Below are positions 1,786-38,992 of a stretch of 64,000 bases of DNA, piece after piece. Both the position numbers and the translations under genes were made by a program. Below the pieces are notes generated by a model that saw only the letters and a list, made by a program, of their open reading frames with translations, was not told the DNA's origin and did no database searches. Origin of the DNA: Bugula neritina (Eukaryota > Animalia > Bryozoa). Position 1 is the stretch's first letter. Each line of letters opens with the position of its first letter. The DNA lies in contig OZ037767.1 of the NCBI GenBank assembly GCA_964035545.1, positions 16,213,292 to 16,277,291 of the forward strand. The letters run 5' to 3'.

Positions 1786-2364
1786 ATGAGTAGCAACAGC
1801 ACATTTGGTGAGTGACTACGCATACAGTACTTGTATTTTTATAATTTATTAAGCACTGTTAAGTAGAATATTCTATCTTAAAATCTCGGAGCTAAATTAT
1901 ATCAAAGAGTAATTAAAAACATTTTCATCATTATAGTTGGAAAAATTTTTTTAATCTTTTTCTATTTTTAAAATGTAACTATTAATAAATTTTATGTAAC
2001 TTTAGTTTAGCATGCAAAGCCTTTAAAACTTATTCAAATCTGATTCTAATCTACAAACTAGTAATACTGCAAATTGTTTGTATAATATCACAGCTAACTC
2101 TTTCAGAACAAAGTATTTATTCAGACTAAAAATACTTGCTTATAGTACTAAATTCAGTGCAATACAATAGTGTAATACATAGTGGAGTACAAAATTGCAT
2201 AACCTTATATTTTAATTTTAGACATTAAAAAGCTCTCTCCAAAGAAGAGATACACGTTAATATGGAGAAATTTTAACATTCCTCCACCTGCGCACATAGC
2301 AAGACGATATGCTGAGATAACCCAACCAGAACCATACTATGATTATAATGAGTTTATATATTAA
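1786..2364 (+). pseudogene. Truncated tandem copy A of the LPPKKRY microprotein gene (exons 1-2 only)
   Basis: Exon 1786-1807 (ATG...TTT G|gtgagt), exon from 2222 (ttttag|ACATT). The exon-2 donor is replaced by the duplication junction (GA|gtttat), and read-through gives ...YYDYNEFIY* at 2362-2364. Motif here is LSPKKRY. Confidence 0.55.
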
Positions 2365-2591
2365 CCAATCACATGCATTCGTTACTGCATTTGCTCAACC
2401 CGGTTACTTCGGAGGTATAGGGCTCTTCCCAGGAGGTAGGGTTCTTCCCAGAGTAGTTGACCTAGTTTTGCGTTGACCAATCAAATTCAAACACATTCCA
2501 TTGTGACTATAAATACAGCAGTGTGTTCTGTTAAGGTTCAGTCTACAACTTATCTGTGTAATACATCTGAATCTGAACTCTATTCTCCACA

Positions 2592-3562
2592 ATGAGCAGC
2601 AACAGCACATTTGGTGAGTGACTATGCATACAGTACTTGCATTTTAATAATTTATTGGGCAACATTAAAAAGAATATTCTATCTTGAAATTTTGGAACTG
2701 AATTATATCTGAAAGTTATTAAAAACATTCTCATAATTAGGCCTTTAGTTAAAAAATCTTTTTTAATGTTTTTCTATTTTTAAAATGTAATTGTTAAAAA
2801 ACTTTATGTAACTTTAGTTTAGCTTGCAGAGCCTTTAAAACTTATTCTAATCTGATTCTAATCTACAAACTAGTAATACTGCAAATTGTTTGTATAATAT
2901 CACAGCTAACTCTTTCAGTACAAAGCATTTATTTAAACTAGAAATACTTGCTTTGTACTAAATCGCAGTGCAATACAATAGTGTATTACATAGTTGAGTA
3001 CAAAATAGGATGTATATATAAAATTGCATAACACTATATTTTAATTTCAGACATTAAAAAACTCCCTCCAAAGAAGAGATACACGATAATATGGAGGAAT
3101 TTTAACATTCCTCCACCTGCACACATAGCAAGACAATATGTGGAGATAATCCAACCAGAACCATACTATGACTATAATGAGTAAGTACTGCTTTACTGCT
3201 CAGTCTTTCTGTTGTAACCAGAATTCTTAGTCAAACTGCTCTCTGATTACCAGATAAACTTTCTCCATATAATTATTTATAGTCTAGATCTGTCAGGTTT
3301 GTGTTTGCAAGGCTTAAATTAACAATAAAGGCATATATTTAGTTAAAGAAATATTCTATGCAATCAGTAGTTCTATTAGATGATGGTGTAATTCTAAACT
3401 TTGACTGACAGAAGAGAAACTATTATGAGTCTTCATATATTAATATCTGGATAACTATTATTTTATTATACTTTTAGAAAGATGACAAGTAACCTCCAAG
3501 ATGGTGGACTACATACATATTATGTGATAAACTCTGATACTCTGGTGAAAAGGGGGAGCTGA
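2592..3562 (+). CDS. Unannotated 78-aa microprotein, copy B (3 coding exons)
   Basis: Exons 2592-2613, 3051-3180, 3478-3562 with canonical gtgagt/gtaagt donors, tttcag/ttttag acceptors and consistent phases (1,2). Product MSSNSTFDIKKLPPKKRYTIIWRNFNIPPPAHIARQYVEIIQPEPYYDYNEKMTSNLQDGGLHTYYVINSDTLVKRGS*. TATA upstream, AATAAA at 3767-3772. Confidence 0.7.
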
Positions 3563-3779
3563 ATCTGTCACATGCTGAGGAATTGAATTACTCAGCTTCC
3601 TGTATTTTAATAACTGATCTAAACAAGTTTCCTCAAGTGTAAAGTTAGCTGAAATGTCAAACTAGCATGTCAACATGATATTTCTATTTATATAACTATA
3701 TAATTATATGATATTGTATATAAATATATAATGTACTATATTTTACTTGATTGTATTATTTAAACTAATAAAACTTTTT

Positions 3780-4760
3780 ATATTATCTTGTATATACCAG
3801 GCGGGCTGAAGTATGAATGTGATTTGAATATATGTGCTTACAAATATATTTTATTTCATCTAATAATAGATTGTACTTTTTATTTCCTGCCAAACAAGCA
3901 ACTTACAGAAAATTTGAGTGAGAAAATCAGAGCTAAAAGTCTATTTCTCACTATTTCTGTAGTAGATTACATAACATTTTAAAGACTGCTGCTTTAACCA
4001 TATATAGTAACTGCTTTGAATTCAGCAGCAATCAGTCTGTATATCTGGTGTTAGCGAAGAATATTTTTAATTTGCATTTATTATTAGTTCAACACACCAA
4101 GCTAAGACTTTCTCTACATTTAACTGTGAAATTATGATTGCAGAATCAACACATGCCAATATAGTAGTTATAACCGCTAGTTATATTTAATATTTTATAT
4201 TTTGTTTGCTTAAATGATTATAAAGCTATTCTTTATAGGCCAGTAAATTTTTATTGGATTTATTCAGCTTTAACAGTACAAAACCATATTTTGTCACTTA
4301 TGCTGCCTATTTCTCTCCTAATAAACAAAAGTTTTGATTATTTTGGCATGGGCAAGTTTCTTCAATGTTCAAAGTCTTTCAGGTAAAAGAGATTTAAGAG
4401 TTCAATAGTTCAATTTATTTACAGGCCAATGAATGAAAATTTCATAATTACGTATCTTAATTATTAAGTAATAAAATATGCTCTCAAGAGACTCACATCT
4501 TTGAAAAGCTGTATGATTGCTGGCCAATCTGTGAGGATTAAAAATTGAGAAACTCAGAAAGCTAAAAATTAAAGCCTGTAAATATAAAGTTACATAATAG
4601 AGAAGCTGGTATTAGCTGGCAATTACAGTCAGCTTGGTAAGTGCTGTGCATCTGAGCTAAGTCTATGAAATCTGCTCTACTTATACTGAATTTGGTTTGG
4701 TAAAATAGTTTTCAGAGTTTAGGTTGTTTTCAACACAAAGAATAATTCACTAACCAATCT
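3780..4760 (+). repeat. Locally amplified ~1-1.5 kb dispersed repeat (one copy)
   Basis: Shared blocks (gtagtagattacataaca; ccaatc..gaggattaaa..ttgagaaactcagaaagc; gctggtaattacagtcag) recur at ~13.7-15.7, 17.9-19.6, 29.0-31.2, 36.3-37.3, 39.2-40.2 and 51.5-53.1 kb. Family and ends not resolved. Confidence 0.6.
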
Positions 4761-5399
4761 TAAGCAGTATGATGGCTGCAGCAAAAGTCATCAGCTGAAG
4801 CCATCATATTAATAATTTAATTAATTGCTCCTTGCTTTATACATGCATAATATAATTATTATATAATCTTATATTTAATCAAATATAATAAAACAAATAT
4901 AGACTTGTATTGTATATTATATCTATGATATATATAAATTGCGTTTTTAGAAAGGGGGAATTTAATAGTAAACATCTATGGAAGGGGAGTTGATGGTATG
5001 ACAAAGGTTTGGAATCGTTTAAGTTCTTATGGAATGAGCTGCACTTTAGCGTAGGTAACTTATAACTATTGTTTACATCTCGTAACTAAGTAGCTAGCCG
5101 CCACAATTAGCGATCCCTGACTCCGGCGCCAAAGGTTTCATTTGATTTAGTCAATGGCCGTTTCCGTAGTTACCAGGTTACCAAGTGGCCGGCCAGTTTA
5201 CAGACCGATACTATAATAATAGAAATAAAAATATACTCTCGTGTAGTTTGAGTAATATCATTATTTCTCAAATTAATATGGTACTTTACCCTGTTTACTG
5301 TCTATTTACATTATATTTATACTTACTCTTAGTCTTACTCTAACAATAACAGTAACGACTAACTCTTACTCTTAGTGAATTACTATCACTCTGTAACAC

Positions 5400-5473
5400 A
5401 CTAATACTAATAGTAATAGTAATACTAATACAGTAATAGTAATACTAATACTAATACTAATACTAATAGTAAT
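5400..5473. repeat. (ACTAAT/AGTAAT)n hexanucleotide microsatellite
   Basis: Direct reading of the repeat. Confidence 0.8.
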
Positions 5474-5897
5474 GGTATTTGCTATTTAGTATTTAAGCGT
5501 GTCATTCTTTAAATTAAAATCATTATAATATTATTTAAAATTAAATAGTTGGTAATCTATAACTTCAAATGTATAACAATAAATTATTGTTATAAACTCA
5601 AAGTTGAAGATTACCATATTAATCAAATGATATAAATTATTGAATATTCTATTATATTTATTATTATATTACTTATTCAAAAAGTTATTGTTATAATAAA
5701 CTTAATGATTTTAATTGACTTCAAGTTTAGGGTCAAGTTTTAATAATGGAAAATTGATCTACTACTAGTACTAGTACAAATTTTTAGATTCATGTTACAC
5801 TTACTCAATTTGAATATCAGAATATCTTACCCATGGTACTAGTCAGTTAATAATCACAATGAATAGTAATCACTGCATGCAATCACTATTTACAATC

Positions 5898-6790
5898 TTT
5901 CACCTTGCAAAGTCTTCTCACTATATTATCATGATCTATTCAATCGCTGTATGGTTTAATCCGCTTTTGTATGTATATAGATCTTCTCATCAGTTTTGGT
6001 AAGGAAAGTATTAGCTAGCGCCAAATCACTGCTTCTTGTATAATCTAGTATTTTCTCTCCATCATCATTCCTGACTTACCTTTATGCCATCTCTCAAAGC
6101 CCTCCAGTCTAACTGTTCAGTCATGTTCATTCAAGTCTCCTGCAAATATCAGTTGTTCTGATGCCGGGGTGCGTGTAATGGTTCTTTCCAGTTGGTTCCA
6201 GAATCGCTGCTCCTCCTGCTCTTTGCAACCCTGTCAGGGCGCATATACGGTCACTATGTTGTATGCCTTCTCAGGTGTTATTAATTTCATTGCCATTATT
6301 CTTTCAGATGCTCTCTTAGTTGCTATTACTTTGTCTTGCCACTCCTCACTAAGGCATATTGCAACTCCATTTCTCGGTCTTCTACCTCCACTATAGTATA
6401 GTTTATAAACATCTCCGATGTTTCTTGTTTTTCCTTCCTCTTGTCCTTCCTCCATCACGTTTCCTTTAAGCATACTATGTGAATTTTTCTTTTATTCATC
6501 TTGTCTGTTACCTCTCTACTCTTTCTTGTTAGGGTGCCTATATTAAGGGATGTCGACCTCAACTTTGTTTGCCTCGCTTGTTTTCTTCTCACAGCGTCAA
6601 TGCATAAGTGCCATTGCGCATCGCTTCCGGGGTATGCCCTATAGTGTTAGCTGTCTATATTCTGATTGCCTCTGGCATAATTGTTTGTGGGGCATGTTTC
6701 ATTAAGGACTAGATGCTCTTCCTGATGTCCACCCTCTGTGTTCACCTGAGCTCGTGACCGGCTGTTTGCTCCTCTGGTTTGCTGAGCATT
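5898..6790 (-). mobile_element. Degenerate RTE-clade LINE 5' fragment (AP endonuclease domain)
   Basis: Frameshifted/stop-containing translation includes SLNIGTL, YKLYYSG..RNGVAI, SERIMAMKL, IVTVYAP, IFAGDLN, RNDDGEKIL, LALANTF and TYKSG, which are typical RTE APE motifs. No RT present. Absent from the equivalent position upstream of copy 3. Confidence 0.85.
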
Positions 6791-7010
6791 CAGGAAACAT
6801 TCTGACTATCATGTATACCAGTGTTATTACCTGCCTTTGTTTAACATAAATTTTCATGTCTTTATATGTAAAGTTGGTTGTTGATGGTCTGGTTGAGACC
6901 TAGAACTTAATAGGTCAGTCTTTGGTTGGGAAAGTGAAGGACAAACCTTCACCGATGTAGGTTAAATATTATGCGTATCTTTTACAGGGTTTCCTTATCA
7001 TATAACCAAG

Positions 7011-10000
7011 ATGGAAGAATCCAGAGTTGTGAAAAAAAGACTAAACAATTCGTATCGCTGTGGGTACTGCTCGCAGTACTTCAACAAACTTGAAGATCCC
7101 AGAACTCTGCCCTGTCTGCATGTGTACTGCATGAGATGTTTGAAGACTGACATCGGTGGTAGGAAGGATCATATCAGATGTGCTTATTGTAGGTGAGTTA
7201 CAGTACATAACACAATATATCATGTCATAGGCTTGCATGTGATTTTCTCACCATCATCTAGGAGTTGTCTGATCTGTGTCTATGGAAAGCTAACAATACT
7301 GTATATTCTATATTAACTCGGGTTACTAACTTGTGGATAATGAATAAATTTTTACTAATCATTTAAATTCAATTTATATGCTCCCATTTTTGTATTTTCT
7401 ACCGTCTATAGTTTTATATAATTGAGTTTTCCTAATCATTGTAATTGAAGTCAAAGTTTTGACATCTAAAAAGGTGGCTATCATAATTATTAAGTACTTT
7501 GCTTGGTAATTAACAATAAGTTCTCACTTTTATTAGCAAACAACATTTTAGCAAGCAATCTTCTTCTACTTCTTAGATCGTTCTGGCCTCTTTCCATGGA
7601 TTGATCGATCTGAGATCAATTTATGTAAAGACAGTGATTGTGTTGTATAGTCTGTCGTCTATATATTATATGAATGTGTGTTGATGAGTGATGAGTATCT
7701 TTTTGAGTATTTGTCAAGGACATATAGCTGTGTGTGTTGATGGAGTATTTCATTACTTCAGACATCATATTATATTAGACTTCCTGGTATACTAAACAGA
7801 GATAACACACTGAATAATATATTGTAGGAAAGATCACTATGACATAACAGACCCCACTACTCTACCTGTCGCAAAGCATGGAGACCCCTTGGAATATAAA
7901 TCTCCACCCAAACCTGCACCCATGCCTTGCGATGTTTGTAAAGATGGAACAGAAGCTGCCACATTCTGTGTCGACAGTCAAAAGAGGTTGTGTCAGCAGC
8001 ATCAAGAAGTGAGTCTTTCTTATATCATTTCTCAATATTGGTTACTAAACCAGTTCTGGTTTGTGTGTAGAATATTATTGAAAAGAAATGTTGAGTCTGT
8101 GTGACTTTTTATACTAAACACACAGTTTCACAGTGCAGTGAGTCAACTATGACAGACTTGTTGGTGAAAATACAACCAACTAAACTGTTGACCTTTATTA
8201 TACAGAATCACAGAGAGCTGATGGGAGATAGACATCAGTTTATTGACATTGAGGTCTACAGAGCTTCTCCCCAAAGATATACTATAACTGAATGTGAACA
8301 TCATAAACAGGAACAGCTGACAGAAGTGTGTTCCAAGTGTCACCAGATATTCTGTATGAGATGTGATATGAGGACTGGCTGTAAGGATAAGACAGGTATT
8401 TACTTGCTGTTTCTATTTTTGTAGAAAGAAACTGGGAAATATTACACGAACCTGTTATTGATTATTCTATCATTAAAATAAGTTATGTAACAGCAAAAGA
8501 GGCCGTAGGTTTTTCAGACTGAGTTGATATGAATATTGAAACTAGATCTTGTGAAAAAAATTAAAAAAGACACGCTAACGGCTGGAGGTATTTGTCAACA
8601 TATTAAGGTTTGTGTGAGACAGAAGTGCATAGTGCAGGAGTTTATATTCTAACTGTTATGTTGAATATTCAGTATATTTCATCCTTCAAGTGTCTGTTTC
8701 CTTGATAAGATGGCATAGACATAACTTTAACTCACCAGTGTCCCACCTTTTTCAAACCATTCCGCCTTTTTATAAGTGTTTTCTATGAAGTTTCCCCCTT
8801 TTAAGAAACACTATTTTATATTTATAAAGAAAATCTGGGACAGGTTCTTTTCCCTAATAATTCTTTGAGTGTAAGAAAAGTCACTTAGTTTTTGACATAG
8901 AACAGTGTCTGCAACAACTTCAGTTATTAGCTTTGAAAGCATTGATGCTGCTATTAAAAGCTGTGAGTTGATGATTATATATAACTCATTCATTTTAGAT
9001 TCAGATTTTTTAGTGGAGCAAATATATCTACTAGGTATGCAGTAACTTGTTTATAGGGATCAGTTTGACTGGCTGCAAAAAATTTCCTGTTGTTTTTTGC
9101 ATTAAAGAAACTTTTTAACCTCCATTTGTAGTAGGACAGGTAGCAGCTAGGGTAGAGTGAATATTAGACACATGGATGTAGAAGTAAACTTAGATTATAA
9201 AGTGTAGTGTGGATAAATAAGTGAACTAAATAAAACGGAGGTTTTATAGTTATACATATACATGTAACTTAGAATACAAGGGAAGCGCTTAAAGAGCTGG
9301 AACAAACTGTGTGAATTTTTTAAAAATCAAAACCCCTTTTAAGCCCAAATTCTGCACAAGGAGGAGCTCCCCTGAGGTTGGAGCTACTGCTTTAAATTTT
9401 TTAACTACATTATTCCAAGTGCAGTGAATAATGAGCTAACCATGTGACATCTTTCTAGAATGTCCTTTTGTGTAAATTAGTGCTAGAGAAAGGTCAGCTA
9501 TGATCAACTCAGATAGCAATACTTGAGACAGAGTCCAACTGTTTAGTAATTACATAGTATGTGTATAGTGATACATCATCAACCTGTAGTTACAAGTAAT
9601 ATGTGTACAATATCATATCTAAAATATATTACTTTTAGTAATAGTGTGATTTTATGTATACAGAAGAGACAGTAGCATTCCATGACTTGGCATCTTTGAG
9701 TGATTTGTCTTGTGAGTTACGAGAGAGTCTGACTGGTGGAATAGAGACTCTGTCTGAGAAAGTTGCAAAGTTGAATGACATCTCAAAGGATGCCTGGAAA
9801 GAACTGAGTAAAATAGAAGATGAAGTGAAGAAGATGGTTGCCAGAGTAAACGCTGTAGCTGATGCTCAGGTATGCTGACATATGGTGATGTCATCTAATG
9901 TATTTCTGTTTGTCTGAAATTAGGTTTTGCATTTGGTCTTTCAGTTGTAATCAGAAATGAATTTCATTTGTCATTCAAATTAACTGGCCATTAAAGCATT

Positions 10001-12807
10001 ATCATTCTGTGTGCAGGTAGCAGTAGTCATTCATCATATGTAAGCCTAGGGCCACACGGTGCGTATTTTCGCATATACGAAAATTGAAATCACAAGTAGC
10101 AAAGGTGTCCACTGTATGCGTTGAGAAAACATTCGCACTTGTCGCTCAGCATTCTCAACGCAAGTGCGAATCGTCTCTGTCGTCGTCACTTAATTGGCTG
10201 GTAGTTATTCAGCGAGCCCAATTTCTTTATTTTAGTACTACATTCCAGTAAATTGCGTTTTATTAAAAGTGAGTGCGATTTAAAAATGAAAGCTTCATTT
10301 ATCACGCATCACTGGCGCTACAGTGGACACCTTTGCTACTTGTGATTTCAATTTTCGCATGCGAAAATACGCACCGTGTGGCCCTAGGCTTACTCAGTGC
10401 AGAGGAACCTGCATGTCAATACAGATGACTCAATCATCCTTCTGCAACTGTCAATCAATCACTCAGAGAGAGGTTGGCGGTGTGAGTGATTGACAGGTGT
10501 CAGGAGGAGGAGACTAGTCACATTATGTACTAACTCTCTGCTGTGTATTATGAAGTGTCACGTGACTGAGTCATTGTATTCTTAGTGGGTGATTTGTCAC
10601 TTTCATTTCAAGTGTAGAGGTTGTGAGGTGCAGATGTGGTTATCCTGTGTTACTATTTATTAGATAGAAAAGATTAGAAAGAGGGCTACAAACCTGAGGC
10701 TAGAAATATATGGATATTTGAAAAGCTGCACACAGATAGTGGATAATTATAGAATAGATCTGGCCTTGAGTAAGACAATTGGCAGACAGTCTCTGCTGGA
10801 CACAGTACAACATGCAGTTGATAAGTTCAATGATGCAGGGATTGTGAGAGAATACAAAGAGATGAGTGAGAAGATAAAAAAGGCTACAGATATTGGTGTA
10901 ATAGAGAAGTGTGTACTTCCAGACAGCATCTTGGTACCAACATGTAGGTGGAGTCTATAAATAGTAACACTAACTGTAAGTGATTGTCTGCCTGTAATCA
11001 GTTAAATTGCTTTTATCGAATATTTTAATAGGAGAATAAAGAGAAACCTCTGATAATTCGAAAAATTGATGGAATTTATTTATTAGAGAATTGAGTTTTG
11101 TTCTACTCTCACATTATGAGACATTTCTGCTGTGTTTCAGAGTTTATGATGTATAAGTGAGCTGCTAAACTGTGTTATGCTGACTACGTGCTGTCAGTAT
11201 TAACAAAATATTCTCACTTAGACCTGTGCATCACGTAGCAACTTGTAGTAACTACAGACTGCTTGTATTTAAAACATCTTTTCATTTCAAGTTTGAAAAG
11301 CTGTTCCCCACCTCCTCAGGTGATGAGATTCTCAAGTTATAGTATTGTTGTTTTGTTGTTGCAGACAGTGAAGACAGTCTGGGGCTGAAGCTGCTGCAGC
11401 CACCAGCTTCTCTTCAATCTGATGGACTTCCTGTACGTGGACAGTGTGTCTCAGTAAATATCTCAGCTGATGGACATATGATTTGTCGGACAGGAGGAGG
11501 TGTAGAAGTAATAAATAAAGACACTCTGGATACCATCAGCTCAGTGAAGAACACCAACACTACAAAGTGGTGGGATATAATCCAACCTGAAGGGGTGATG
11601 GTTGGCTGCTGGTATAACAAGAAGGAGAAAACAGCTGAAGTCTCACTTCTTGATCCGAACTCCTTTGAAAAGTCTCGCTCTGTCTACAAGCAGTCAGTAG
11701 ATGAGCTCTTCGCTTACTATAGAATAGCTCAGCACCTCTCACTGATCTATATTGTAGACAAGAGAGAGAAACAGCTGGTAGTCTGTGACCTAGTTGACAA
11801 TAAAATACAGAAGTTTCCTCTTCCTGAGATGGAGTACCCTCTACCTGTATGCATCCTCCCAGACTCAACTCTCCTCATAGGAGACTTCACTGTAGATGGT
11901 AAAGTGAGAAGATATAAAGTGGAGAACACAACTCTCACTCTGATGTGGGAGTTTCGTCACATCTCAGACCCAACTGGTATTTCCTTTGATCCAACATCTG
12001 AACTGATTCACATCTGTACACTGAATGGACCTCTCTTCATCCTCTCACTTGAAGGTAAATACTCTGTTTATTATAGTAAGTTTAGTTATTTTATATATAA
12101 TTATGTTGCAGTAAATAATATATTTTAATAATTAACAGTAAACAAATTCTACTCTTAAGATATAATATTGTTAGTATTTATCAAGTCACTGATGTTAATT
12201 TTAGCTAAAAGTTATGTAATAAAGACTGTAACATGCTGATAGTAGATGTTACATTCTTCATCACATGACTTGTAGCTAATAATAGTATTAGTGAATAATA
12301 CTGCCTCCCTACAATAAATTTATTTCCAGCTGCAGTAACATGTAGGATGTTAGCACAGGTAAAAGTGTATATTATACTGTATAAGGTGTACTATGTGTAG
12401 TGTGCAGTGAGCTCTTAGTAAACTCTCTATGTGATAATGTTGGAGTAGCTGCAGTAGTATTAGAAATAGACATGTGGGTGTGTTCTTGCTAAAAGCCACA
12501 GGCTAAGTTTGTGGGTCAAGGTCATTACAGTAGTATAATGAGACACTATTTTCTGCTCTGTTTGAATATTTACTTCATGCATATAACCTGCTTAGTTCCA
12601 TCTTTACAGGAAGTCTGTCTGTTTCTCTTAATACATACCACCTGCTACCATATGATGCTATTATTTACAGGTCAACTGGTGCTTACAGTTCCCAGAAAAA
12701 GTCTTGGTGTGAGTGGCCGGGTGCTGGACATTGCTGTGTATAACAGAAACACTGTGTTTCTAGCATGTGGATGTGATGGTCTAAAGAGATACACAATAAA
12801 ATACTAA
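7011..12807 (+). CDS. TRIM E3 ubiquitin ligase copy 1 (RING-B1-B2-coiled coil-NHL-like beta-propeller), 621 aa
   Basis: Exons 7011-7192, 7828-8008, 8206-8395, 9664-9869, 10664-10943, 11365-12054, 12671-12807: all GT-AG, phases consistent, 1866 nt. C3HC4 RING (CGYC..PRTLPCLHVYCMRC..CAYC), B-boxes (CDVC..CVDS..CQQH; CEHH..CSKC..CMRC), blade motifs (IYIVD, YPLPVCI, LLIGD, PTGISFD). Confidence 0.9.
7430..7620 (+). mobile_element. Relic of the CAC-ended MITE family in TRIM intron (also ~22385-22570, ~45045-45225)
   Basis: Clear similarity to 20530-20700 of the intact element. Confidence 0.65.
10044..10389. mobile_element. Tourist/PIF-Harbinger-like MITE in TRIM copy 1 intron 4
   Basis: ~70-bp TIRs GCCTAGGGCCACACGGTGCGTATTTTCGCA..., flanked by TAA/TTA. 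Empty site in copy 3 (~47622 catgttactcag). Confidence 0.85.
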
Positions 12808-14475
12808 ACTTACCAGCTACAGTTTACTAATAATCAGCTCAGTGAGGTACTGAGAGATAAAATGGATATTTGTCATCAACATAATTATATTCATTACAAT
12901 TCAATACACACACTAATGATAGTGTCAGGTATATTATATTGTGTGTTTCATTTACACTGTAATTATACTTCTGTATATTATTCCATGTTCAACAGAACTT
13001 GCACTGCTTATATGCATTATTTTATGGTAATTGTCATGAATTGTAGTTATTTAAGATATTTGACTGTATAAAATATGTGTTGCTATTTTACTATCTAATA
13101 AAAGTTTATTTGTTAGTGAAAAGATATTTTGTTTTCATGCCTCATTAGCTTTAGTTCAAGTTGAGTTTGGTTACTAAAAAATAATCTTTACTGGAGCAGT
13201 AACTGTAAATGACTCCTCTGTGGGAAAATGCATTCACTGAATTGACAATCAGGTGCAAGTAACTCCAACATGACTGTAGGCAAGTTTTTCCAAACATATA
13301 TAAAATACATTTTATTGCTGTGTATACAACAGCATTGAGTAGCCAATCAAATTGTTTCTTGTTGTGCATTTAGGAATCTGATAAATAATAATATATAAGG
13401 CAATCAACTAGATATAAACACTGTTTTACTCTACACATGAGCTGTCTGTGATACAGTCGCTTTGTAAAATGTGTTTCATTTGATCAGTTTAGTTCAATTG
13501 GTTGCAATTTAATTATGATGTGTTGCCCTATTCACCTGGTAGAAATACCATGTGTACTGACAGAGGACAACTCCTAAGCATGTCTAAAGGCTTCCTTTTA
13601 GTAAACAAGATATCACAATGCTATCATCTGATTGGACAATTCTGTTCTCATGAAACTGCAATTAGTGCTCTTGTGTGAATTGAGACAAGTTGCCACGTTG
13701 GCTTTATAAAATGCAAATAGTGCAGGAAAAGCTGAATCTGCTGCATATTGAGAGAGCAAAAGTATAATACTGTAGTAGATTACATAACACTTTAATAACT
13801 GCTGTTTTTATTCATGTTAGCTGCTTCGAAATCAGCAGCTATTAGTCTGTATACATGACGCTGTCACATATTCTCATACTGCATATTATATTTATAAAGT
13901 AAATAATCTGCAACTAAAGTAGCATAAGCATGTTTACATAATATCAAATCATTTATTGCATATATTTTTCTTATATAGTGGGTTCACAAGTGTTGGGCTA
14001 TTATGTTAACAAAATTCAATTTATCTTTCTGTATTTTCATTTGTAAAATAATCATAATTATGATAGGTGTAAATGTGTAATAGATTAATTATATACATAT
14101 AAATTCTAAGTGTGCAAACTTTTCTAAACATCAAACTGCTAATTAGTTTTATGCTCTCAAGTTTTAAAATGTTTTTTGAGTTTGCAAGTTGTCTTAATTT
14201 GGTATTTTGACAGCCTAAGCTAAACTTTCTTGATTATTATTATTGTTATTATTATTCTCTCGTATACCAGACATGCTGAAGTAACTTGAATAGGTGTGCA
14301 TACAGATATCTTTTATTTTATCCAATAATAGATTGCAATCCTTATGTTGCCTACAGGTGCCTAACAGCAAAGTTGAATGAAAAGATGAGAGAGCTAAAAA
14401 TCTGATGGTGTAGTAGATTACATAACATTTTAATAACTGCTGCCTTCCTTTATAGTTACTCCAGCATATTTTAAC

Positions 14476-16198: not shown

Positions 16199-16887
16199 TA
16201 GACCATGTAAAACTCAGCCAATCAGCGAAGTGTACCAGGTCAATGTCTTACCATTGTAACTGATATAAAATTCTGCAAGTTCAATTGCAAAATGCATGCT
16301 TCTAAAAGCTAGTTGTGCAACTTTTTTTTATGCATTATTTAATTTCATATCTTAAATTGATGACTCTTGAAATGAATTTTTAAAATGTCTAAATTAAGTG
16401 TTTATAAATTGCAATTAAAAATTTCATGTCTAGAAAAATGACCTGGTACACTTTTGCAACTTAAGGCCAATTATTACATAACTGCCAGCTTAGTAGTTAT
16501 TTGTTGTTGCAGCTTGAATGGGTTATTGTTTAGCATTGGAAGCTTGCAATGCTAAACAATAACTCATTCAAGCTGCAACAACAAATAACTACTAAGCTGG
16601 CAGTTATGTAATAATTGGCCTTAAGTTGCAAAAGTGTACCAGGTCATTTTTCTAGACATGAAATTTTTAATTGCATTTTATAAACACTTAATTTAGACAT
16701 TTCAAAAATTCATTTCAAGAGTCATCAATTTAAGATATGAAATTAAATAATGCATGAAAAAAAAGTTGCACAACTAGCTTTTAGAAGCATGCATTTTGCA
16801 ATTGAACTTGCAGAATTTTATATCAGTTACAATGGTAAGACATTGACCTGGTACACTTCGCTGATTGGCTGAGTTTCACATGGTCTA
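16199..16887. mobile_element. Spacer-less palindromic (foldback) non-autonomous DNA transposon
   Basis: TAGACCATGT...ACATGGTCTA, arms ~344 bp and near-perfect, centre AAGCTT at 16540-16545. Absent from the paralogous site near 54200 (acagcaattggtagg). TT or ATT duplicated at the flanks. Confidence 0.85.
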
Positions 16888-21955: not shown

Positions 21956-24900
21956 ATGGCTGGGAATGAGTCAAGAACCGTGAAAAAAAGATTAAACAAC
22001 TCGTATCGCTGTGGGTACTGCTCGCAGTACTTCAACAAACTTGAAGACCCCAGAACTCTGCCCTGTCTGCATGTGTACTGCATGAGATGTTTGAAGACTG
22101 ACATCGGTGGTAGGAAGGATCATATCAGATGTGCTTATTGTAGGTGGGTTACAGTAAATAACACAATATATCATGTCATAGGCTTGCATATGATTTTCTC
22201 ATTATCATCTAGGAGTTGTCTGATCTATTTCTATGAAAAGCTAACAATACTGTATATTCTATGTGAACTCTGGTTACTAACTTGTGGATAAGGATAGTAT
22301 TTTAACTAATTATTTAAATTCAATTTAAATGCTCCCACTTTTTGTACCTTCTATAACCCTCTATAATTTTATATAATTGAGTTTTGTTAATCATTGTACT
22401 TGAAGTTAAAGTTTTGGCATCTAAAAGGGTGGCTATCATAATTATTGAGTACTTTGCTTAGTAATTACCAATAAGTCATCACTTTTATTAGCAGACAACA
22501 TTTTACCTATGCAGTATTTTTCTACTTCTCAGATTGATCTGGCATCTTTTCATGAATCGATCGATCTGAGACGGTGATTGTGTAATAGCCTGTGGTCTAT
22601 ATATATGAATGTGTGTTGATGAGTGATGAGTATCTATTTGAGTATTTGTCAAGGACATAGCTGTGTGTGTGGATGGAGTATTTCATTACTTGAGACATCA
22701 TATTATATTAGACTTCCTGTATACTAAACAGAGATAACACACTGAATAATATATTGTAGGAAAGATCACTATGACATAACAGACCCCACTGCTCTACCTG
22801 TCGCAAAGCATGGAGACCCGCTGGAATATAAATCTCCACCCAAACCTGCACCCATGCCTTGCGATGTGTGTAAAGATGGAACAGAAGCTGCCACGTTCTG
22901 TGTCGACAGTCAAAAGAGGTTGTGTCAGCAGCATCAAGAAGTGAGTCTTTCTTATATCATTTCTCAAGATTGGTTACTAAACTAGTTCTGGTTTGTGTGT
23001 AGAATATTATTGAAAAGAAATGTTGAGTCTGTGTGACTTTTTATACTAAACACACAGTTTCACAGTGCAGTGAGTCAACTATGACAGACGTGTTGGTGAA
23101 AATACAACTAGCTAAACTGTTGACCTTTATTATACAGACTCACAGAGAGCTGATGGGAGATAGACATCAGTTTATTGACATTGAGGTCTACAGAGCTTCT
23201 CCCCAAAGATATACTATAACCGAATGTGAACATCATAAACAGGAACAGCTGACAGAAGTGTGTTCCAAGTGTCACCAGATATTCTGTACGAGATGTGATA
23301 TGAGGACTGGCTGTAAGGATAAGACAGGTATTTACTTGCTGTTTCTATTTTTGTAGAAAGAAACTGGGAAATATTACACGAACCTGTTATTGATTATTTT
23401 ATCATTAGAATAATTTATGTAACAGCAAAAGAAGATGTAGGTTTTTCAGATTGAGTTGATATGAATATTGAAACTAGATCTTGTGAAAGAAATTGAAAAA
23501 GACTTGCTAACGGCTGGAGGTATTTTTCAGCATTAAGGTTTGTGTGAGACAGAAGTGGATAGTGCAGCAGTTTATATTTTCACTGTTATGTTGAATATTC
23601 AGTATATTTCATCCTTCAAGTGTCTGTTTCCTTGATAAGATGGTATAGACATAACTTTAACTCACCGGTGTCCCACCTTTTTCAAACCAATCCGCTTTTT
23701 TATAAGTGTTTTCTATGAAGTTTCCCCCTTTTAAGAAACACTATTTTATATTTATAAAAAAAATCTGGGACAGGTTCTTTTCCCTAATAATTCTTTGAGT
23801 GTAAGAAAAGTCACTTAGTTTTTGACATGGAACAGTGTCTGCAACAACTTCAGTTATTAGCTTTGAAAGCATTGATGCTGCTATTAAAAGCTGTGAGTTG
23901 ATGATTATATTATATAACTCATTTATTTTAGATTCAGATGTTTTAGTGGAGCAAATATATCTACTAGGTATGCAGTAAATTGTTTATAGGGATCAGTTTG
24001 ACCGGCTGCAAAAAATTTCCTGTTGTTTTTTGCTTTAAAGAAACTTTTTAACCTGAATATTAGACACATGGATGTAGAAGTAAACTTAGATTATAGAGTG
24101 TAGTGTGGATAAATTAGTGAACTACATAAAACGGAGGTTTTATAGTTATACATATACATGTAACTTAGAATACAAGGGAAGCGCTTAGAGAGCTGAAAAA
24201 AACTGTGTGAGTTTTTTAAAAATCAAAACCCCTTTTAAGCCCAAATTCTACACAAGGAGGAGCTCCCCTGAGGTTGGAGCTACTGCTTTAAATTTTTTAA
24301 CTACATTATTCCAAGTGCAGTGAATAATGAGCTAACCATGTGACATCTTTCTAGAATGTCCCTTTGTGTAAATTAGTGCTAGAGAAAGGTCACCTATGAT
24401 CAACTCAGATAGCAATACTTGAGACAGAGTATAACTGTTTAGTAATTACATAGTATGTGTATAGTGATACATCATCTACCTGTAGTCGCAGATAGTAGGT
24501 GTACAATATCATATCTAAAAGTATATTACTTTTATTAATAGTGTGATTTTATTTATACAGAAGAGACAGTAGCATTCCATGACTTGGCATCTTTGAGTGA
24601 TTTGTCTTGTGAGTTACGAGAAAGTCTGACTGGTGGAATAGAGACTCTGTCTGAGAAAGTTGCAGAGTTGAATGACATCTCAAAGGATGCCTGGAAAGAA
24701 CTGAGTAAAATAGAAGATGAAGTGCAGAAGATGGTTGCCAGAGTAAACGCTGTAGCTGATGCTCAGGTATGCTGACATGGTGATGTCATCTAATGTATTT
24801 CTGTTTGTCTGAAATTAGGTTTTGCATTTGGTCTTTCAGTTGTAATCAGAAATGAATTTCATTTGTCATTAAAATTAACTGGCCATTAAAGCATTATCAT

Positions 24901-27900
24901 TCTGTGTGCAGGTAGCAGTAGTCATTCATCACATGTAAGCCTAGGGCCACACGGTGCGTATTTTCGCATGCGAAAATTGAAATCACAAGTAGCAAAGGTG
25001 TCCACTGTACGCGTTGATAAAACATTCGCACTTGTCGCTCAGCATTCTCAACGCAAGTGCGAATCGTCTCTATCGTCGTCACTTAATTGGCTGGTAGTTA
25101 TTCAGCGAGCCCAATTTCTCTATTTTAGTGCTACATTCCAGTAAATTGCGTTTTATTAAAAGCGAGTGCGATTTAAAAATGAAAGCTTCATTTATCACGC
25201 ATCACTGGCGCTAGGCTTACTCAGTGCAGAGGAACCTGCATGTCAATACAGATGACTCAATCATCCTTCTGCAACTGTCAATCAATCACTCAGAGAGAGG
25301 TTGGCGGTGTGAGTGATTGACAGGTGTCAGGAGGAGGAGACTAGTCACATTATGTACTAACTCTCTGCTGTGTATTATGAAGTGTCACGTGACTGAGTCA
25401 TTGTCTACTCAGTGTGAAAATCTGTCACTTTCATTTCAAGTGTAGATGTTGTGAGGTGCAGATGTGGTCATCCTGTGTTACTATTTATTAGATAGAAAAG
25501 ATTAGAAAGAGAGCTACAAACCTGAGGCTAGAAATATATGGATATTTGAAGAGCTGCACACAGATAGTGGATAATTATAGAATAGAGCTGGCCCTGAGTA
25601 AGACAATGGGCAGACAGTCTCTGCTGGACACAGTACAACACGCAGTTGATAAGTTCAATGATGCAAGGATTGTGAGAGACTACAAAAAGATGAGTGGGAA
25701 GATGGAAAAGGCTACAGATATTGGTGTAATAGAGAAGTGTGTACTTCCAGACAGCATCTTGGTACCAACATGTAGGTGGAGTCTATAAATAGTAACACGT
25801 ACTAACTATAAATAACTTTCTGCCTGTAATCAGTTAAATTGCTTTCATTGAATATTTGAATAGTAGAATAACGAGAAGCCTCTGATAATTTGAAAAGTAG
25901 ATAGAGTTTATTTATTAGAGGATTGAGTTTTGTTCTACTCTCACATTATGAGACATTTCTGCAGTGTTTCAAAGTTTATGATGTATAAGTGAGCTGCTAA
26001 ACTGTGTTATGCTGACTACCTGCTGTCAGTATTAACAAAATATTCTCACTTAGACCTGTGCATCACGCAGCAACTTGTAGTAAATACAGAATGCTTGTAT
26101 TTAAAACATCTTTTCATTTCAAGTTTGAAAAGCTGTTCCCCACCTCCTCAGGTGATGAGATTCTCAAGTTATAGTATTGTTATTTTGTTGTTGCAGACAG
26201 TGAAGACAGTGTGGGGCTGAAGCTGCTGCAGCCACCATCTTCTCTACAGTCTGATGGACTTCCTGTATGTGACTGGTGTCCCTCAGTAAACATCTCAGCT
26301 GATGGACATGTGTTGTGTCGGACACCAGGAGGTGTAGAAATAAGAAATAGAGACACTCTGGATACTATCAGCTCAGTGAAGAACACCAGCACTACAGAGT
26401 GGTGGGAGATAATCCAACCTGAAGGGGTGATCGTTGGCAGCTGGTATAACAAGAAGGAGAAAACAGCTGAAGTCTCACTTCTTGATCCGAACTCCTTTGA
26501 AAAGTCTCGCTCTGTCTACAAGCTGTCAGTAGATGGACTCTTTCCTTACTGTAGAATAGCTCAGCACCTCTCTCTGGTGTATATTGTAGACTGTGAAAAG
26601 AAACAGCTGGTAGTCTGTAATCTAGTTGACAATAAAATACAGAAGTTTCCTCTTCCTGAGATGAAGTACCCTGACCCTGTATGCATCCTCCCAGACTCAA
26701 CTCTCCTCATAGGAGACTTCACTGCAGATGGTACAGTGAGAAGATATAAAGTGGAGAACACAACTCTCACTCTAATGTGGGGGTTTCCTCACACCTCAGA
26801 ACCAACTGGTATTTCCTTTGATCCAACATCTGAACTGATTCACATCTGTACACTGGAAGGACCTCTCCTCATCCTCTCACTTGAAGGTAAATACTGTGTT
26901 TATTATAGTAAGTTTAGTTATTTTATATATAATTATGCTGTAATAAATAATATATTTTATTAATTAACAGTAAACAACTTCCACTCATAAGATATATTAT
27001 GATATTGTTCGTATATATCAAGTCAATGTTGTGATTTTTAGCTTAAAGTTGTGTAATAAAGACTGTAACATGTTGATAGTAGATGTTACATTCTTCATCA
27101 CATGACTTGTAGCTAATAATAATATTAGTGAATAATACTGCCTCCCTACAATAAGTTTATTTCCAGCTGTAGTAACATGCAGGATGTAAGCACAGGTAAA
27201 AGTGTATATTATATATTGTATAGGTTTAAGGTGTACTCTGTGTAGTGTGCAGTGAGCTCTTAGTAAACTTTCCATTCAGTCTTCTATTTCAAGGGTTCAC
27301 CTGGTAGTGTAGAAGATAGGGACTCCACACTGCCAAGTGCTGCAAGGGGTTCAAACCCACCCATCAGCATGTCTATAGTTAGTATACTATGGAAGTGTTT
27401 TACAGTAATTTTAGAGGTGCTCAGTCTAGCAACTGTACAGACTGCCAACTACACATGAGTTATGAGTTTTAGTTTGACTTCAGTCTAGTGCTGCAACTGT
27501 TTTGGTCATCAGATAATTTAAAGATAAATAATTTAATACTTTTTGACCCGCCATCACTGAGACTATTGTAATTTGATGATGGCTGGTAGACAGTGTTTGC
27601 TGGTGGGACTCAGGTGGCTGTAGTTGGTTCTTGTCAAGTATTTAATATACATGTGATAATGTTCGAATAGCTGCAGTAGTATGAGAAGTAGACATGCATG
27701 TGGGCGTGTTCTTGCTAAAGACCGCAGGCTAAGTTTGTGGGTCAAGGTCAATACATTAGTATAATGAGACACTATTTTCTGCTCTGTTTGAATATTTACT
27801 TCATGCATATAACCTGCTTAGTTCCATCTTTAAAGGAAGTCTGTCTGTTTTTCTCAATGCATACCACCTGCTACAAAAATGTTATTATTTACAGGTCAAC

Positions 27901-28037
27901 TGGTGCTAACAGTTCCCAGAGAAAGTCTTGGTGTGAGTAATGACTGGGTGTGGGTGAATGACATTGCTGTGTATAACAGAGACACAGTGTTTCTAGCATG
28001 TGGTGATAGTCTAAAGAGATACACAATAAAATACTAA
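21956..28037 (+). CDS. TRIM E3 ubiquitin ligase copy 2, 625 aa
   Basis: Exons 21956-22143, 22760-22940, 23138-23327, 24561-24766, 25492-25771, 26197-26886, 27895-28037. Open frame, 1878 nt, same domains as copy 1, distinct N-terminus MAGNESRT. Confidence 0.9.
24939..25216. mobile_element. Same Tourist-like MITE insertion as 10044-10389, with most of the right TIR deleted
   Basis: Same site in intron 4; the deletion joins two CTA microhomologies. Confidence 0.8.
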
Positions 28038-29692: not shown

Positions 29693-30035
<343 letters not shown>

Positions 30036-34415: not shown

Positions 34416-37400
34416 GTTAAAATCATGTGTAAAATTCTTGTGAGACTTCCTTTGCTGAATTCTTTCGTTCATAGTAAAATATTTTAAAGAACAAACCCCC
34501 ACTCCACCCACTTTCTTACTTTGTGGTTACTTATTTATATTATTTATTAGAGACCTTTATAGCCAAAGGCTTTGTGCAATCCTATAAATATAAACATTGT
34601 TTTAGATTTTAGTGTTTTTATAGTATAAATTATATTATATATTGTTTCCTTTTCATGGTTTAATTTAAGTTATTTATGATGTTGTCCACCATTTGAATTC
34701 CGTCCAATAAAGCTCTAACTGTCAAGTACATGTGAATACGCAATATGCTTCAAATGGAGTGGAACAAAAGTGAAAGATAAAATCTCTACAGTATATATAG
34801 TTACATAATTCTACATCTCCAGTACTAAAGCACTTATAAGACTGGGATGTAGCTAACTCAAACAAAAAATAGCTATTTTTGTGAGTTTCAGGGACTAAAG
34901 TATTAGAATTATCTTTCCAGAAAACTATAAGCCTAAAGTCTTTACTTTATAAATATGAATTTTTGGAAATTGAAAGATTATTTTTACTAAACTTTGTTTA
35001 TCGTAAGCTTCTGCTTTTACATATTTTAAGTATTTGGAATCACTTTCGAATTTTAAAATTCTTACAATATTAAAAGAATAAAAGTTTTTAATCTTCACTG
35101 TATATATGAGTATAGAGGCAGTTTGCTTATTAATGTTTAAAACACTGTCATAGTATTTCTTTCTTGTAGTTTTAAAATTTTCTACAGTTGCATTAAAAGT
35201 TACAAATTTTAATTATAAGGATAATATAAAAGCAGCATTTCCCTTTGCTTACAAAGCTTTACAACTATAGCTAACACTTGCATGCAGTGGAATCATTTTA
35301 GAGATCAAAAGCCTGAGATAGAATTTGCTGTTCATTTGCAGAAATTGAATTCATTTTTCTGTTTAATGTACCATCTGAACATATTTGCTGAAAAAAACTA
35401 TGAGTTGGAAAAAAAATTGAACCATTTGCTTACTTGAAATTTTGAAAACTACATAATATAATATAAATATATAATATATATATTTTCTTGAGGAACTGTT
35501 TTCACCTGGTTAGCCTTGTTGCTAGCAAGGAATAATTTTAACACTCTACAATATCTTTTAATTTGAAATTGTAACTGATTAACAGTTTTGGTTTACTGTT
35601 GATTATAAGATTTTATGGCAGCTCAGATTCAAACAGCTTACATGCACTATTTTATTACCTTTTTTTCTAAAAAAAACTCTGTTTGTAAAAAAAATATAAC
35701 TTATACAAATTTAAAAAAATTATGTTTTAATGGCTTTTACTAGAATTAAAATTAAAACAATATTTTTTTGGATTGAAGTATTAAAATTTGTTCAACTAAA
35801 ATAAAAGGAAAATTTATGAAATTTTGTATTAAGCATTTGACTGGTTTTGTTGTAGAGTTACAGTAAAATTCTGGAGAGAATTCAGAAAAGCCACAGAAAT
35901 TTCTTCCTTAACATCAAATATTAAAATTCTCAAAAATAAAGTTAGTATAGGAGAACCTAAAGAAGTGCCACCTTTTAGTACATCTGTGACAAGAAAGTGG
36001 GTTTGGGGTCTTCCTCCACAATAAAGTGTATTAGCTACAGGCAAAGTGATGTTTATAACAATATAAGTGCTTTACAAAAAGCATTACTGCAACTGATGTG
36101 CTCCTCTCAACTAATACTATGATTGAACAGCCCAGGTCATCTAGAGGTCAAAGAGTAGCCTCAACTCATAGTGTTCAGACTGTAAACAGCACAACTCACT
36201 AAGTGTCCATCTCTGCACAGAGCTGTGAGCTGAGTTTCTCCTGCACTGAGGTCAGGTGCTGGACAGCCTTAAGTGATGCTATACTATGCTAACAAAATTC
36301 AATTCATATTTCTGTATTTTTATGTGTGAAATTATCATATGAATGTGTGATAGTTGAATTATATACAGAAATTCAAAGTGTGCATTTTTTCTAAACATCT
36401 AACTGCCAAGCTTTATATGCTTTCAAGTTGAAATGTTTTTCAAGTTTGCAAGTTATTTTTGATACTTCAATATATCTTAGCTATTTTCTCTACATTTAAA
36501 CTTGAAATTATAACTCGTGCCAAAATAAAACAGCTCACAACATTTAGTGCAAAGTGATTTTAATTACAAATTGTTAAAAGCATTTATATATTCTTTTGCT
36601 TAAATAGTTAGAATTCTCTTACTCTAGCCGCAGTTTAAATAGTTCAAACACTTTCGCCGCCTACTTTCTTTCAGGAAAAAATTTTCCATTATTTCAGCAT
36701 CAGCTTTCACTAATATATAATTCGTGAAATTTTCAGCTAAACAAATTAGTCTAGTTAATCTTGCAAGCCAAAAAAAGAAGATTTAGCAGTTATTCTGTAC
36801 CGTTATAATTACGTAATAAGATCCACTTTTAAAAGACTCACACCTTTAAAAAGCTGTATAATTACTGACCAATCAGAGAGGATTAAAATTTGAGAAACTC
36901 GGATAGCTAAAAATCAAAAGCTGTAATGGAAGAATTACATAATAGAGTAGCTGTCATCAGCTGGTAATTACAGTCAGTTGTGGGTAATTATTGTATTTGC
37001 ATGTGAGCTGTATATCCAATGGAATCAGTCAAACTTATACTAAATTTGATCCAGTAAATTTGTTTTTAAAGTTCAGGTCGTTTTTAACATCAAAGAATAA
37101 TGCACCAACTATTCTTAATTATAGCAAATGAATTCCTGCAAGACTTTATCCTCTCAACCATCATTTTTAGCTTTGATTTGTCAGGTTTAATTTTTGGAAA
37201 TGTAATTGTACAAGTTTTACACCTATTTTCAATCTTCCAAGTTTTATTTGAGAGAAAATATGGTTATAAAATATTAATAATAAAAATATGTTATACACAC
37301 CATAAAACATACATTATACATAGTTGGACTGCTCAAAGCATACTTCAATTCAAAAACAATTTGTTTTTCAATAATATAACATATACTATATATACATATA

Positions 37401-38069
37401 AAGCATGGATTTTATGACCATCATTTTAGTCTTCTTGCATATTGTGACTTCATATATAACTATGAAACTTGAACTGTTATAAATGTGTTTGTTTGCTGCA
37501 AGAAGCATAAAATAAATCAAGTAATTTTCATGTTAATTATTTGCATTGCTTTACTTCCTGTCTACCTTTCTTTAAGTAGAAATAGCAGCATCTTTCATCA
37601 ATAGGATGTTTTATTTTACTCTAAATAGTTACTTTACTAATGGCAGTGGGAGACAAAATTAACCAACCAGAGTTATTATATAAATTACTAAAATATAGTT
37701 CATTATGGTTTTAGCTGGAATCTTTAACTTTTTCTCTAAAATGCTTGGATAAGATTATTTGCATATCCAAAGGTTCTTCATCACCACTTGGAGTTTGGTT
37801 TTATAAAATATTATTAGAAGTTGGCCTAAGTTTATATATTAACCAATCACATGCATCCGTTACTGCATTTGCTCAACCTGGTTACTTCTGAGACATAGGG
37901 CTCCTCCCAGGAGGTAGGGTTCTTCCCAGAGTAGTTGACCCAGTTTTACGTTGACCAATCAAATTCGAACACATTTGATTGTGACTATAAATACAGCAGT
38001 GTGTTCTGTTAAGGTTCAGTCTACAACTTATCTGTGTAGTACATCTGAATCTGAACTCTATTCTCCACA

Positions 38070-38992
38070 ATGAGTAGCAACAGCACATTTGGTGAGTGAC
38101 TATGCATACAATACTTGTATTTTTATAATTTAATAAGCAACATTAAAGAGAATATTCTATCTTGAAATTTTGGAACTAAATTATATCTGTGAATAATTAA
38201 AAACATTTTCATCATTATAGTTGGAAAATCTTTTTTAATGTTTTTCTATTTTTAAAATGTATATACTATTAATAAGTTTTACGTAACTTTAGTTTAGCTT
38301 GCACAGCCTTTAAAACTTATTCTAATCTGATTATAATCTACAATCTAGTAATACTGCAAATTGATTGTAATATCACAGCTAACTCTTTCGGTACAAACTA
38401 TTTGTTTAAATTAAAAATACTTGCTTAGTACTAAATTGCAGTGCAATTCAATAGTATATTACATAGTGGAGTACAAAATAGGATGCATAAAATTGCATAA
38501 CACTTGACTTTAATTTCAGACATTAAAAAACTCCCTCCAAAAAAGCGATACATTCTTCCACCCGCACACATAGCAAGACAATATGTGGAGATAATCCAAC
38601 CAGAACCATACTATGATTATAATGAGTAAGTACTGCTTTACTGCTCAGTCTTTCTGTTGTAACCAAAATTCTTAGTCGAACTGCTCTCTGATTACCAGAT
38701 GAAATTTCTCCATACTGATCTGTCAGGTTTGTGTTTGCAGGGCTTAAATTAACAATAAAGGCATATATTTAGATATAAAAACATTCTATGCAATCAGTAG
38801 TTCTATTAGATGATGGTGTAATTCTAAACTTTGACTGACAGAAGAGAAACTGTTATGAGTCTTCATATATTAATATCTGGATAATTATTATTTTGTTATA
38901 CTTTTAGAAATATGACAAGTTACCTCCAAGATGGTGGACTACATACATATTATGTAATAAACTCTGATACTCAGGTGAAAAGGGAGAGCTGA
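38070..38992 (+). CDS. Unannotated 70-aa microprotein, copy C
   Basis: Exons 38070-38091, 38520-38625, 38908-38992. In-frame 24-nt deletion relative to copy B; LPPKKRY kept with two synonymous changes; stop at the same position. Confidence 0.7.

Follow-up and report, generated by a model that had tools for sequence, protein, structure and literature searches.

A multi-copy orphan microprotein gene with an LPPKKR motif in a tandem array of the bryozoan Bugula neritina

Introduction

The PLKKR repressive motif of the fly proteins Ash1, Snail, Kr-h1, Net and Vrille acts on Smrter/NCoR via Ebi/TBL1 (Klaus et al., PMC9890238), and in flies PLKKR domains pull down Smrter, Ebi and HDAC3, which agrees with the behavior of Snail and MeCP2 (PMC9890238). 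SETD5 binds TBLR1 via a PLKKWK motif (PMC13385800). A stretch of 64,000 nucleotides from the genome of the bryozoan Bugula neritina (contig OZ037767.1, positions 16,213,292 to 16,277,291 of the forward strand; hereafter the window) contains three copies, A, B and C, of a small gene whose product, a microprotein of 78 residues in copy B, carries the sequence LPPKKRY. The gene had been proposed in an initial annotation of the window and was analyzed further here. Its product is like the fly motif in having L-P-x-K-K-R with a lysine upstream.

The carriers of the PLKKR motif are large DNA- or chromatin-binding proteins with Leu at position x (PMC9890238), whereas the microprotein is a free chain of 78 residues with Pro at x. 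The NCoR-interaction domains of MeCP2 (PIKKRK) and SETD5 (PLKKWK) have in common with it a P-x-K-K-R core in a disordered basic segment. In these domains, however, x is hydrophobic and the motif is followed by Lys (PMC13385800), whereas in the microprotein Tyr and a conserved hydrophobic stretch come next and there is no chromatin-reading domain.

Other known systems resemble the gene in part. The classical importin-alpha nuclear localization signal (NLS) is similar in its short, Pro-preceded basic cluster, but the microprotein has only three basic residues and no consensus match. Ataxin-1, named in the initial annotation, has the identical hexamer LPPKKR near its N-terminus; otherwise it has no similarity to the microprotein, and a brief literature search found no paper tying the ataxin-1 LPPKKR to TBL1. 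The Bearded-family proteins are small, are encoded by clustered paralogues, have a basic N-terminal segment and are discussed together with an E3 ligase. The microprotein shares the small size, the clustering and the basic segment, but it lacks the NxxN Neuralized-binding motif, has no Pfam match and is encoded by a gene with introns. In comparison with tandem segmental duplication arrays that contain gene fragments, the mechanism of duplication is ordinary here, although some of the BUB1 pieces that accompany the gene are better preserved than expected. A lineage-specific microprotein in a tandem array is a kind of gene already known.

Results

Structure of the gene and its copies in the window

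The exons of copy B (coding parts 2592-2613, 3051-3180 and 3478-3562, the last including the stop codon; all features are on the forward strand unless stated otherwise) join to an open reading frame (ORF) of 78 residues, and both introns begin with GT and end with AG. The promoter and 5' leader (2351-2591) contain CCAAT boxes at 2365 and 2477, a TATA box at 2507 and, at 2420-2449, a pair of GGG-N5-CCC sites of Rel/NF-kB-like appearance 19 bp apart. Exon 2 provides codons 8-51 and encodes, in order, the basic motif (LPPKKRY codons at 3062-3082), the conserved hydrophobic stretch, a polyproline run and an acidic, Tyr-rich part. A distal AATAAA lies at 3767-3772. The joined reading was used for translation, for codon statistics and for one local tblastn search of a 28-kb stretch.

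Copy C has the same structure, with its promoter and leader at 37829-38069 (CCAAT 37843 and 37955; GGG-N5-CCC pair 37898-37927; TATA 37985) and the coding parts of its exons at 38070-38091, 38520-38625 and 38908-38992, exon 3 starting at 38908 and ending with the stop codon. It encodes 70 residues. Exon 2 of copy C differs from that of copy B by an in-frame deletion of 24 nucleotides (nt), through which the deeply conserved hydrophobic stretch loses 8 residues, and the two changes within the motif, AAG/AAA and AGA/CGA, are synonymous. Copy A consists of a promoter and 5' leader (1545-1785; CCAAT 1559 and 1671; paired GGG-N5-CCC 1614-1643; TATA 1701), the coding part of exon 1 (1786-1807; ATG, seven codons and one nt, GTGAGT donor) and exon 2 (2222-2351), which is fused at about 2351 to the promoter of copy B, and it is without exon 3. 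If copy A is left unspliced, the frame of exon 2 (2222-2364) ends at a stop at 2362-2364 and gives a product of 54 residues. Translation therefore bore out the initial annotation, which had placed a three-exon gene with promoter, ATG, splice sites and AATAAA at these positions, had given 78 and 70 residues for copies B and C and a truncated copy A, and had described the deletion as in frame and the motif changes as synonymous. The motif of copy A, on which that annotation was silent, is LSPKKRY, so LPPKKRY varies even within the window. The exon 2 of copy A is also 97% identical to that of a full copy 0.55 Mb away, L007, compared to 92% for copy B, indicating that the array exchanges or recombines sequence.

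Copies across the genome and evidence of selection

A DNA search of the genome (216,009,554 bases in 321 pieces) identified 11 full copies in addition to copy A, as well as two fragments with promoter and exon 1. They all lie within about 0.7 Mb of one chromosome, contig C3, from 15.60 to 16.32 Mb. Two full copies 122 kb apart, L005 and L006 (C3:16169384 and C3:16047268), are identical over the 1.4-kb gene, which leaves ten distinct full copies. This identity may represent a very recent duplication, a conversion or an assembly duplication, and the GGG-N5-CCC sites are damaged in both.

The ATG, both donors, both acceptors and the open frame are retained in all ten distinct copies. Eight of the encoded proteins have 78 residues and that of copy C has 70, while L003 encodes 83 as the result of a one-base deletion near the stop, four codons before it. 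In pairwise comparison, the exons diverge by about 5%, intron 1 by 10% and intron 2 by 7%, and the introns contain 29 indel segments. The proportions of synonymous (pS) and nonsynonymous (pN) differences are 0.128 and 0.034, respectively. The ratio of nonsynonymous to synonymous rates (dN/dS) was 0.36 with the GY codon model (likelihood-ratio test, LRT, against 1, p = 1.8e-4) and 0.26 with the MG model without kappa (LRT p = 5e-7), indicating purifying selection. When neutral evolution was simulated on the intron tree, all ten ORFs remained intact in 0 of 5000 runs. Furthermore, about 8 frameshifting indels would be expected from the intron rates and 1 was observed. The initial annotation had claimed that the frame survives every difference between copies, had proposed dN/dS across the family as a check and had regarded frameshifts accumulating at a neutral rate in other copies as a refutation; the frame did persist in all full copies, and frameshifts did not reach that rate.

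The constraint is not uniform. The pN/pS ratio is lowest in codons 1-18 (0.08), and the C-terminal half evolves faster (0.34-0.45). For exon 3 alone, the dN/dS test is not significant (p 0.14), while a simulation of frame retention gave p ~0.01; the frame of the gene model is open in 10 of 10 copies, and the next-longest frame is broken in half of them. An alternative exon-3 frame that reads KLPPR was rejected since it contains stops in 5 of the 10 copies. In L011 (C3:15604777) a junction some 65 nt ahead of the ATG has removed the CCAAT boxes, the TATA box and the GGG-N5-CCC pair, and the frame is still open. The sole sequencing run that contains the locus covers the introns as well and is therefore DNA, not RNA. 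Taken together, the gene is almost certainly a working protein-coding gene, present in multiple copies and under purifying selection.

Older paralogous exons

A protein search of the genome revealed a diverged relative of exon 2 at C3:15,060,908 on the minus strand, with 63% identity over 30 residues, and a second, broken unit 270 bp beyond it. The two units (L043:1315-1584, minus strand; C3 15.0606-15.0609 Mb) lie 0.55 Mb from the modern array, among CPEB-like gene pieces, and are flanked by CPEB1-like RRM exons at the margin of an array of CPEB duplicates. The existence of these exons indicates that the family is much older than the present array and its amplified block. No exon 1 matching the old units was found, so they may be dead. 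The possibility that exon 2 derives from a CPEB exon through a common 13-nt stretch was rejected because this stretch is different in half of the copies and in the old paralogue.

The two units have kept different parts of the exon. Unit 1, whose stop coincides with the position of the modern second donor, lacks IKKLP but retains K15-P30 (KKRYTLIWRxFNIPPP) with 8 synonymous changes and 1 replacement in 16 codons. Unit 2 retains IKKLPP, with 5 of 6 codons changed synonymously, and continues with RKKYTL and a stop, so that its motif reads LPPRKK. Selection has thus covered the entire segment I9-P30, through YTLIWRxFNIPPP and beyond the motif. Since the oldest conserved stretch extends well past the motif, the deletion in copy C does not prove that the remainder is dispensable; copy C may have been weakened by it, and need not show that the motif alone counts.

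Properties of the protein and of its motif

The soluble protein of about 9 kDa has a strongly segregated charge, with a basic N-terminal half (pI 11) and an acidic, Tyr-rich C-terminal half (pI 4.6). No signal peptide or membrane segment was found in it, the maximum hydropathy over 15 residues being 0.33; the N-terminal signal peptide of a secreted antimicrobial or signalling peptide is thus absent. An AlphaFold model of exon 2 placed helices at exon residues 6-17 and 23-33 with a low predicted local distance difference test score (pLDDT 61). K15, K16, R17, Y18 and W22 are invariant among the copies that have them, and both prolines vary. In exon 3, the L-x-x-Y-Y encoded at 3508-3522, together with a Gln that precedes its Leu by four residues, bears a loose resemblance to a PCNA box, with the spacing off by one; in one copy a Y is replaced by F, and this is a weak lead.

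The resemblance to TBL1/NCoR-binding motifs that the initial annotation had pointed out has a basis in the literature (PMC9890238, PMC13385800). In the published PLKKR matrix (PMC9890238), KLPPKKR scores 17.6, close to MeCP2 (18.8) and to the SETD5-type PLKKW (18.0), while Ash1 scores 26.0. The variants score less, 11.0 for the LSPKKR of L007 and copy A and 8.5 for the LPPRKK of old unit 2. KLPPKKR is the same at 6 of 7 positions as the tested repressive motif of fly Ash1, KLPLKKR. P-x-K-K-R with the preceding Leu occurs in 8 or 9 of the 10 intact copies, the count depending on L007, which is without that Pro, and on L011, which has Ser at x.

Several observations weigh against a TBL1-binding motif. 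All of the cited tested binders have Leu or Ile at x, where the microprotein has Pro (or Ser), and the strict pattern gives no match. The five training sites of the PLKKR matrix all have Leu at this position and Pro is the lowest-scoring residue there, while the human xLPPKKR matches are only computational, with q = 0.56 (PMC9890238). The prolines are altered in the intact copies L007 (LSPKKR) and L011 (LPSKKR), old unit 1 has lost LP yet kept KKRYTLIWRxFNIPPP, and old unit 2 has changed the motif to LPPRKK. On conservation of the motif above its flanks, the evidence points both ways: codons 1-18 have the lowest pN/pS, and the downstream flank is equally deeply conserved in the old paralogue. 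Strict membership in the PLKKR class fails because Pro occupies the position where tested binders have Leu or Ile, yet the Pro variant may work in the same way.

Other motif patterns were compared with the protein. None of six classical NLS patterns (K-[KR]-x-[KR], Kosugi classes 1-4 and bipartite) matched, and the fallback explanation of the initial annotation, that the motif is just an NLS, is consequently not upheld in its classical form. The Crk-SH3, PP1 and Bearded (NxxN) patterns gave no match in the protein, and these readings were rejected.

Promoter and 3' ends

The second (proximal) CCAAT and the TATA box are invariant in the 10 full copies that retain the promoter. In the window, 6 of the 7 GGG-N5-CCC sites fall in the three microprotein gene promoters as compared to 0.49 expected, an enrichment that counts only once because the three promoters are copies of one. 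The second site of the pair is whole in 7 of 9 distinct promoters. The pair resembles Rel/Dorsal sites; with two such putative sites in a TATA promoter, expression may come in an inducible pulse. Weaker matches (76-85%) to the CCAAT-TATA core (2453-2565) were seen at three unlinked loci, C4:14156786, C2:22444042 and C3:4620455, without coding exons.

Of the two introns, the second is the better conserved, and it contains an AATAAA (3324-3329 in copy B) that is invariant in 10 of 10 copies. The distal AATAAA is canonical in 7 of 10 and reads ATTAAA in copy C. Since the intronic signal is invariant and since read-through past the second donor hits a stop immediately, a two-exon form of 51 residues with an alternative 3' end in intron 2 is possible, the intronic AATAAA being its candidate poly(A) signal.

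Searches outside the genome

Single exons were used as database queries. Exon queries found no match in Pfam, PDB or the ESM Atlas. The word search with a query of 42 residues, which sees only proteins of up to 73 residues, was repeated with the 50-residue open frame and the 51-residue old exon, and none of the three found a match. When a hidden Markov model of the ten exon-2 sequences was run against 1.84 billion representatives, the only match was a repeat-derived one that covered 12 columns without the basic residues. The lineage-specific origin assumed by the initial annotation is in agreement with these exon-level searches, although "orphan" here means that no relative is detectable, with short queries and missing bryozoan annotation limiting the search. 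ORF-based annotation misses this orphan microprotein family, and the sequence family is previously undescribed.

The amplified block

The microprotein gene is part of a repeated block that, according to the coordinates of the RING, propeller and BUB1 exons, consists of the microprotein gene and a TRIM-type RING ligase gene on the plus strand followed by the 3' part of BUB1 on the minus strand. The block measures 20-50 kb; among its repeats are partial copies and deletions, and one neighbor is truncated. The array map was drawn from match coordinates alone, and copies without a listed neighbor may reflect unscored candidates. In the window, TRIM gene 1 (7011-12808, RING exon 7011-7193) is downstream of copy B and TRIM gene 3 (44627-50573) downstream of copy C, while TRIM gene 2 (21956-28030) has no microprotein gene directly upstream; the ends of all three are approximate. 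The 3' (kinase) part of BUB1 lies at approximately 54397-57100 on the minus strand.

Across the array, 9 of the 11 full microprotein genes are followed on the same strand, at a distance of 4.5-22 kb, by a TRIM RING exon; after L007 and L010 the next unit begins without a TRIM in between. Contig C8 carries about 75 TRIM genes without the microprotein gene, and their RING exons are 92-98% identical. The BUB1 kinase exon is present in 7 copies on C3 (15.62-16.35 Mb), but the BUB1 N-terminal domain only once, where the array ends on the right. The roughly 11 copies arose by tandem duplication of a segment composed of the microprotein gene, the TRIM gene and the 3' part of BUB1 on one chromosome; on the simplest reading, a TRIM copy first landed between the microprotein gene and the BUB1 end, after which the block multiplied. 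The co-duplication upstream of TRIM genes reported in the initial annotation thus holds as a shared amplified block, while in the window the microprotein gene precedes only two of the three TRIM genes. The two-gene cassette proposed there finds no support, given the TRIM relatives on C8, L007 and L010 and the co-amplification of BUB1. The TRIM gene looks like a fellow traveler linked by shared duplication rather than a partner.

The BUB1 pieces are better preserved than plain passengers. For the BUB1 exon tested, 4 of 6 extra copies have 95-100% protein identity to the full gene while the nearby DNA is 89-93% identical; of the others, one has a stop and one a 27-nt deletion. Their use as a clean neutral control was rejected for this reason. 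A conserved, CpG-containing segment lies between the microprotein gene and TRIM gene 1 (5013-5319) and, split by a 2-kb insertion, in the unit of copy C (40850-41004 and 43122-43274); it is a candidate TRIM promoter or first exon. The leaders of the first coding exons of TRIM genes 1 and 3 (6988-7010 and 44604-44626) are open and in frame with exon 1 of the microprotein gene; that of TRIM gene 2 differs. Additionally, a satellite with a 23-bp unit occupies 57104-64000 inside a BUB1 intron and runs past the end of the window, and a near-perfect long inverted repeat is found at 16430-16880, its arms around 16560.

Discussion

Our tentative reading, which is less likely than not, is that the product is a nuclear microprotein that competes for a surface of TBL1. 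The gene would be expressed from its TATA promoter, perhaps inducibly through the Rel-like sites, and the protein, being small enough to diffuse, would enter the nucleus. There its N-terminal third would act: K-L-P-P-K-K-R, aided by the adjacent hydrophobic stretch, would occupy the TBL1/Ebi WD40 surface that is used by PLKKR-type repressors to recruit NCoR/SMRT-HDAC3. As it has no DNA-binding domain, the protein would be a stoichiometric competitor of these repressors, and with stoichiometric competition copy number would matter. Certainty falls along this chain, from expression (perhaps inducible) to nuclear action via the N-terminal third and finally to competition at the TBL1 WD40 domain. 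In its complete form, a Rel/NF-kB-inducible, stand-alone microprotein that titrates TBL1-NCoR away from PLKKR-type repressors and was amplified for dosage, the proposal is rather unlikely.

The chief alternative, itself somewhat improbable, is that K15-P30, a basic-plus-hydrophobic segment, forms a helix and docks on a different partner, such as a kinase whose docking groove takes basic residues and then two spaced hydrophobic ones, LPPKKR being incidental. It is this segment that has been conserved in the oldest paralogous exon, AlphaFold placed a low-confidence helix (pLDDT 61) at exon-2 residues 6-17, and K15, K16, R17, Y18 and W22 are invariant where present while both prolines vary. However, copy C is otherwise intact without 8 of these residues, the old exons lie among broken CPEB pieces and may be dead, and none of the defined docking consensus patterns tested was matched. 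It is less probable that the basic patch is a generic nuclear or nucleolar retention or nucleic-acid-binding signal, the acidic, Tyr-rich half being the functional one through an activation-domain-like or phosphotyrosine-type contact. Although the segregated charge and the K/R swap in one old remnant would be expected if charge alone counts, there is neither a monopartite nor a bipartite classical NLS pattern, and the supposedly functional C-terminal half evolves faster (pN/pS 0.34-0.45) and is absent from the old paralogous exon.

Could the microprotein gene and its TRIM neighbor form a functional pair inherited together, either substrate or adaptor with ligase, or toxin with antidote? The arrangement downstream of 9 of the 11 full copies speaks for this, but we think it improbable: the C8 relatives, whose RING exons are 92-98% identical, are on a different chromosome, where the microprotein gene is absent, L007 and L010 lack the TRIM, and the block carries 7 copies of the BUB1 3' exons as compared to one BUB1 N-terminus. 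Moreover, the gene family predates the block, and the rates of evolution differ greatly, with 92-97% identity for the microprotein and 82-85% for the propeller. The idea that exon 1 is an alternative first exon of the downstream TRIM gene, the unit being partly a read-through transcript, draws on the fact that exon 1 ends in phase 1 and that the 23-nt leaders of TRIM genes 1 and 3 are open in the phase-1 frame. Such a match occurs by chance one time in three, the leader of TRIM gene 2 is in another phase, exons 2 and 3 are selected in their own right and the separate CpG-containing segment at 5013-5319 intervenes, so this idea has very little to recommend it. Least credible of all is that there is no protein gene, only young duplicates that have not had time to decay; the one sequencing run that contains the locus is DNA, which leaves room for this view, but the introns differ by 7-10% with 29 indel segments, none of the 5000 neutral simulations kept all ten ORFs, and dN/dS is significantly below 1.

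Whichever partner the microprotein has, the residues that matter are marked by the ten variants found in nature, by the internal deletion of copy C and by the pair of old paralogous exons. If TBL1 is not bound, the family would be a species-level curiosity in a duplication hotspot. If TBL1 is bound, the microprotein would be a competitor free of DNA binding at the site of MeCP2, SETD5 and Snail, and the motif would be widened to a Pro variant. If the complete, Rel/NF-kB-inducible form of the proposal is true, the microprotein would be a natural decoy for the surface affected by mutations in Rett-like disorders, and would serve bryozoans as a feedback device in immune defense or in the response to stress.

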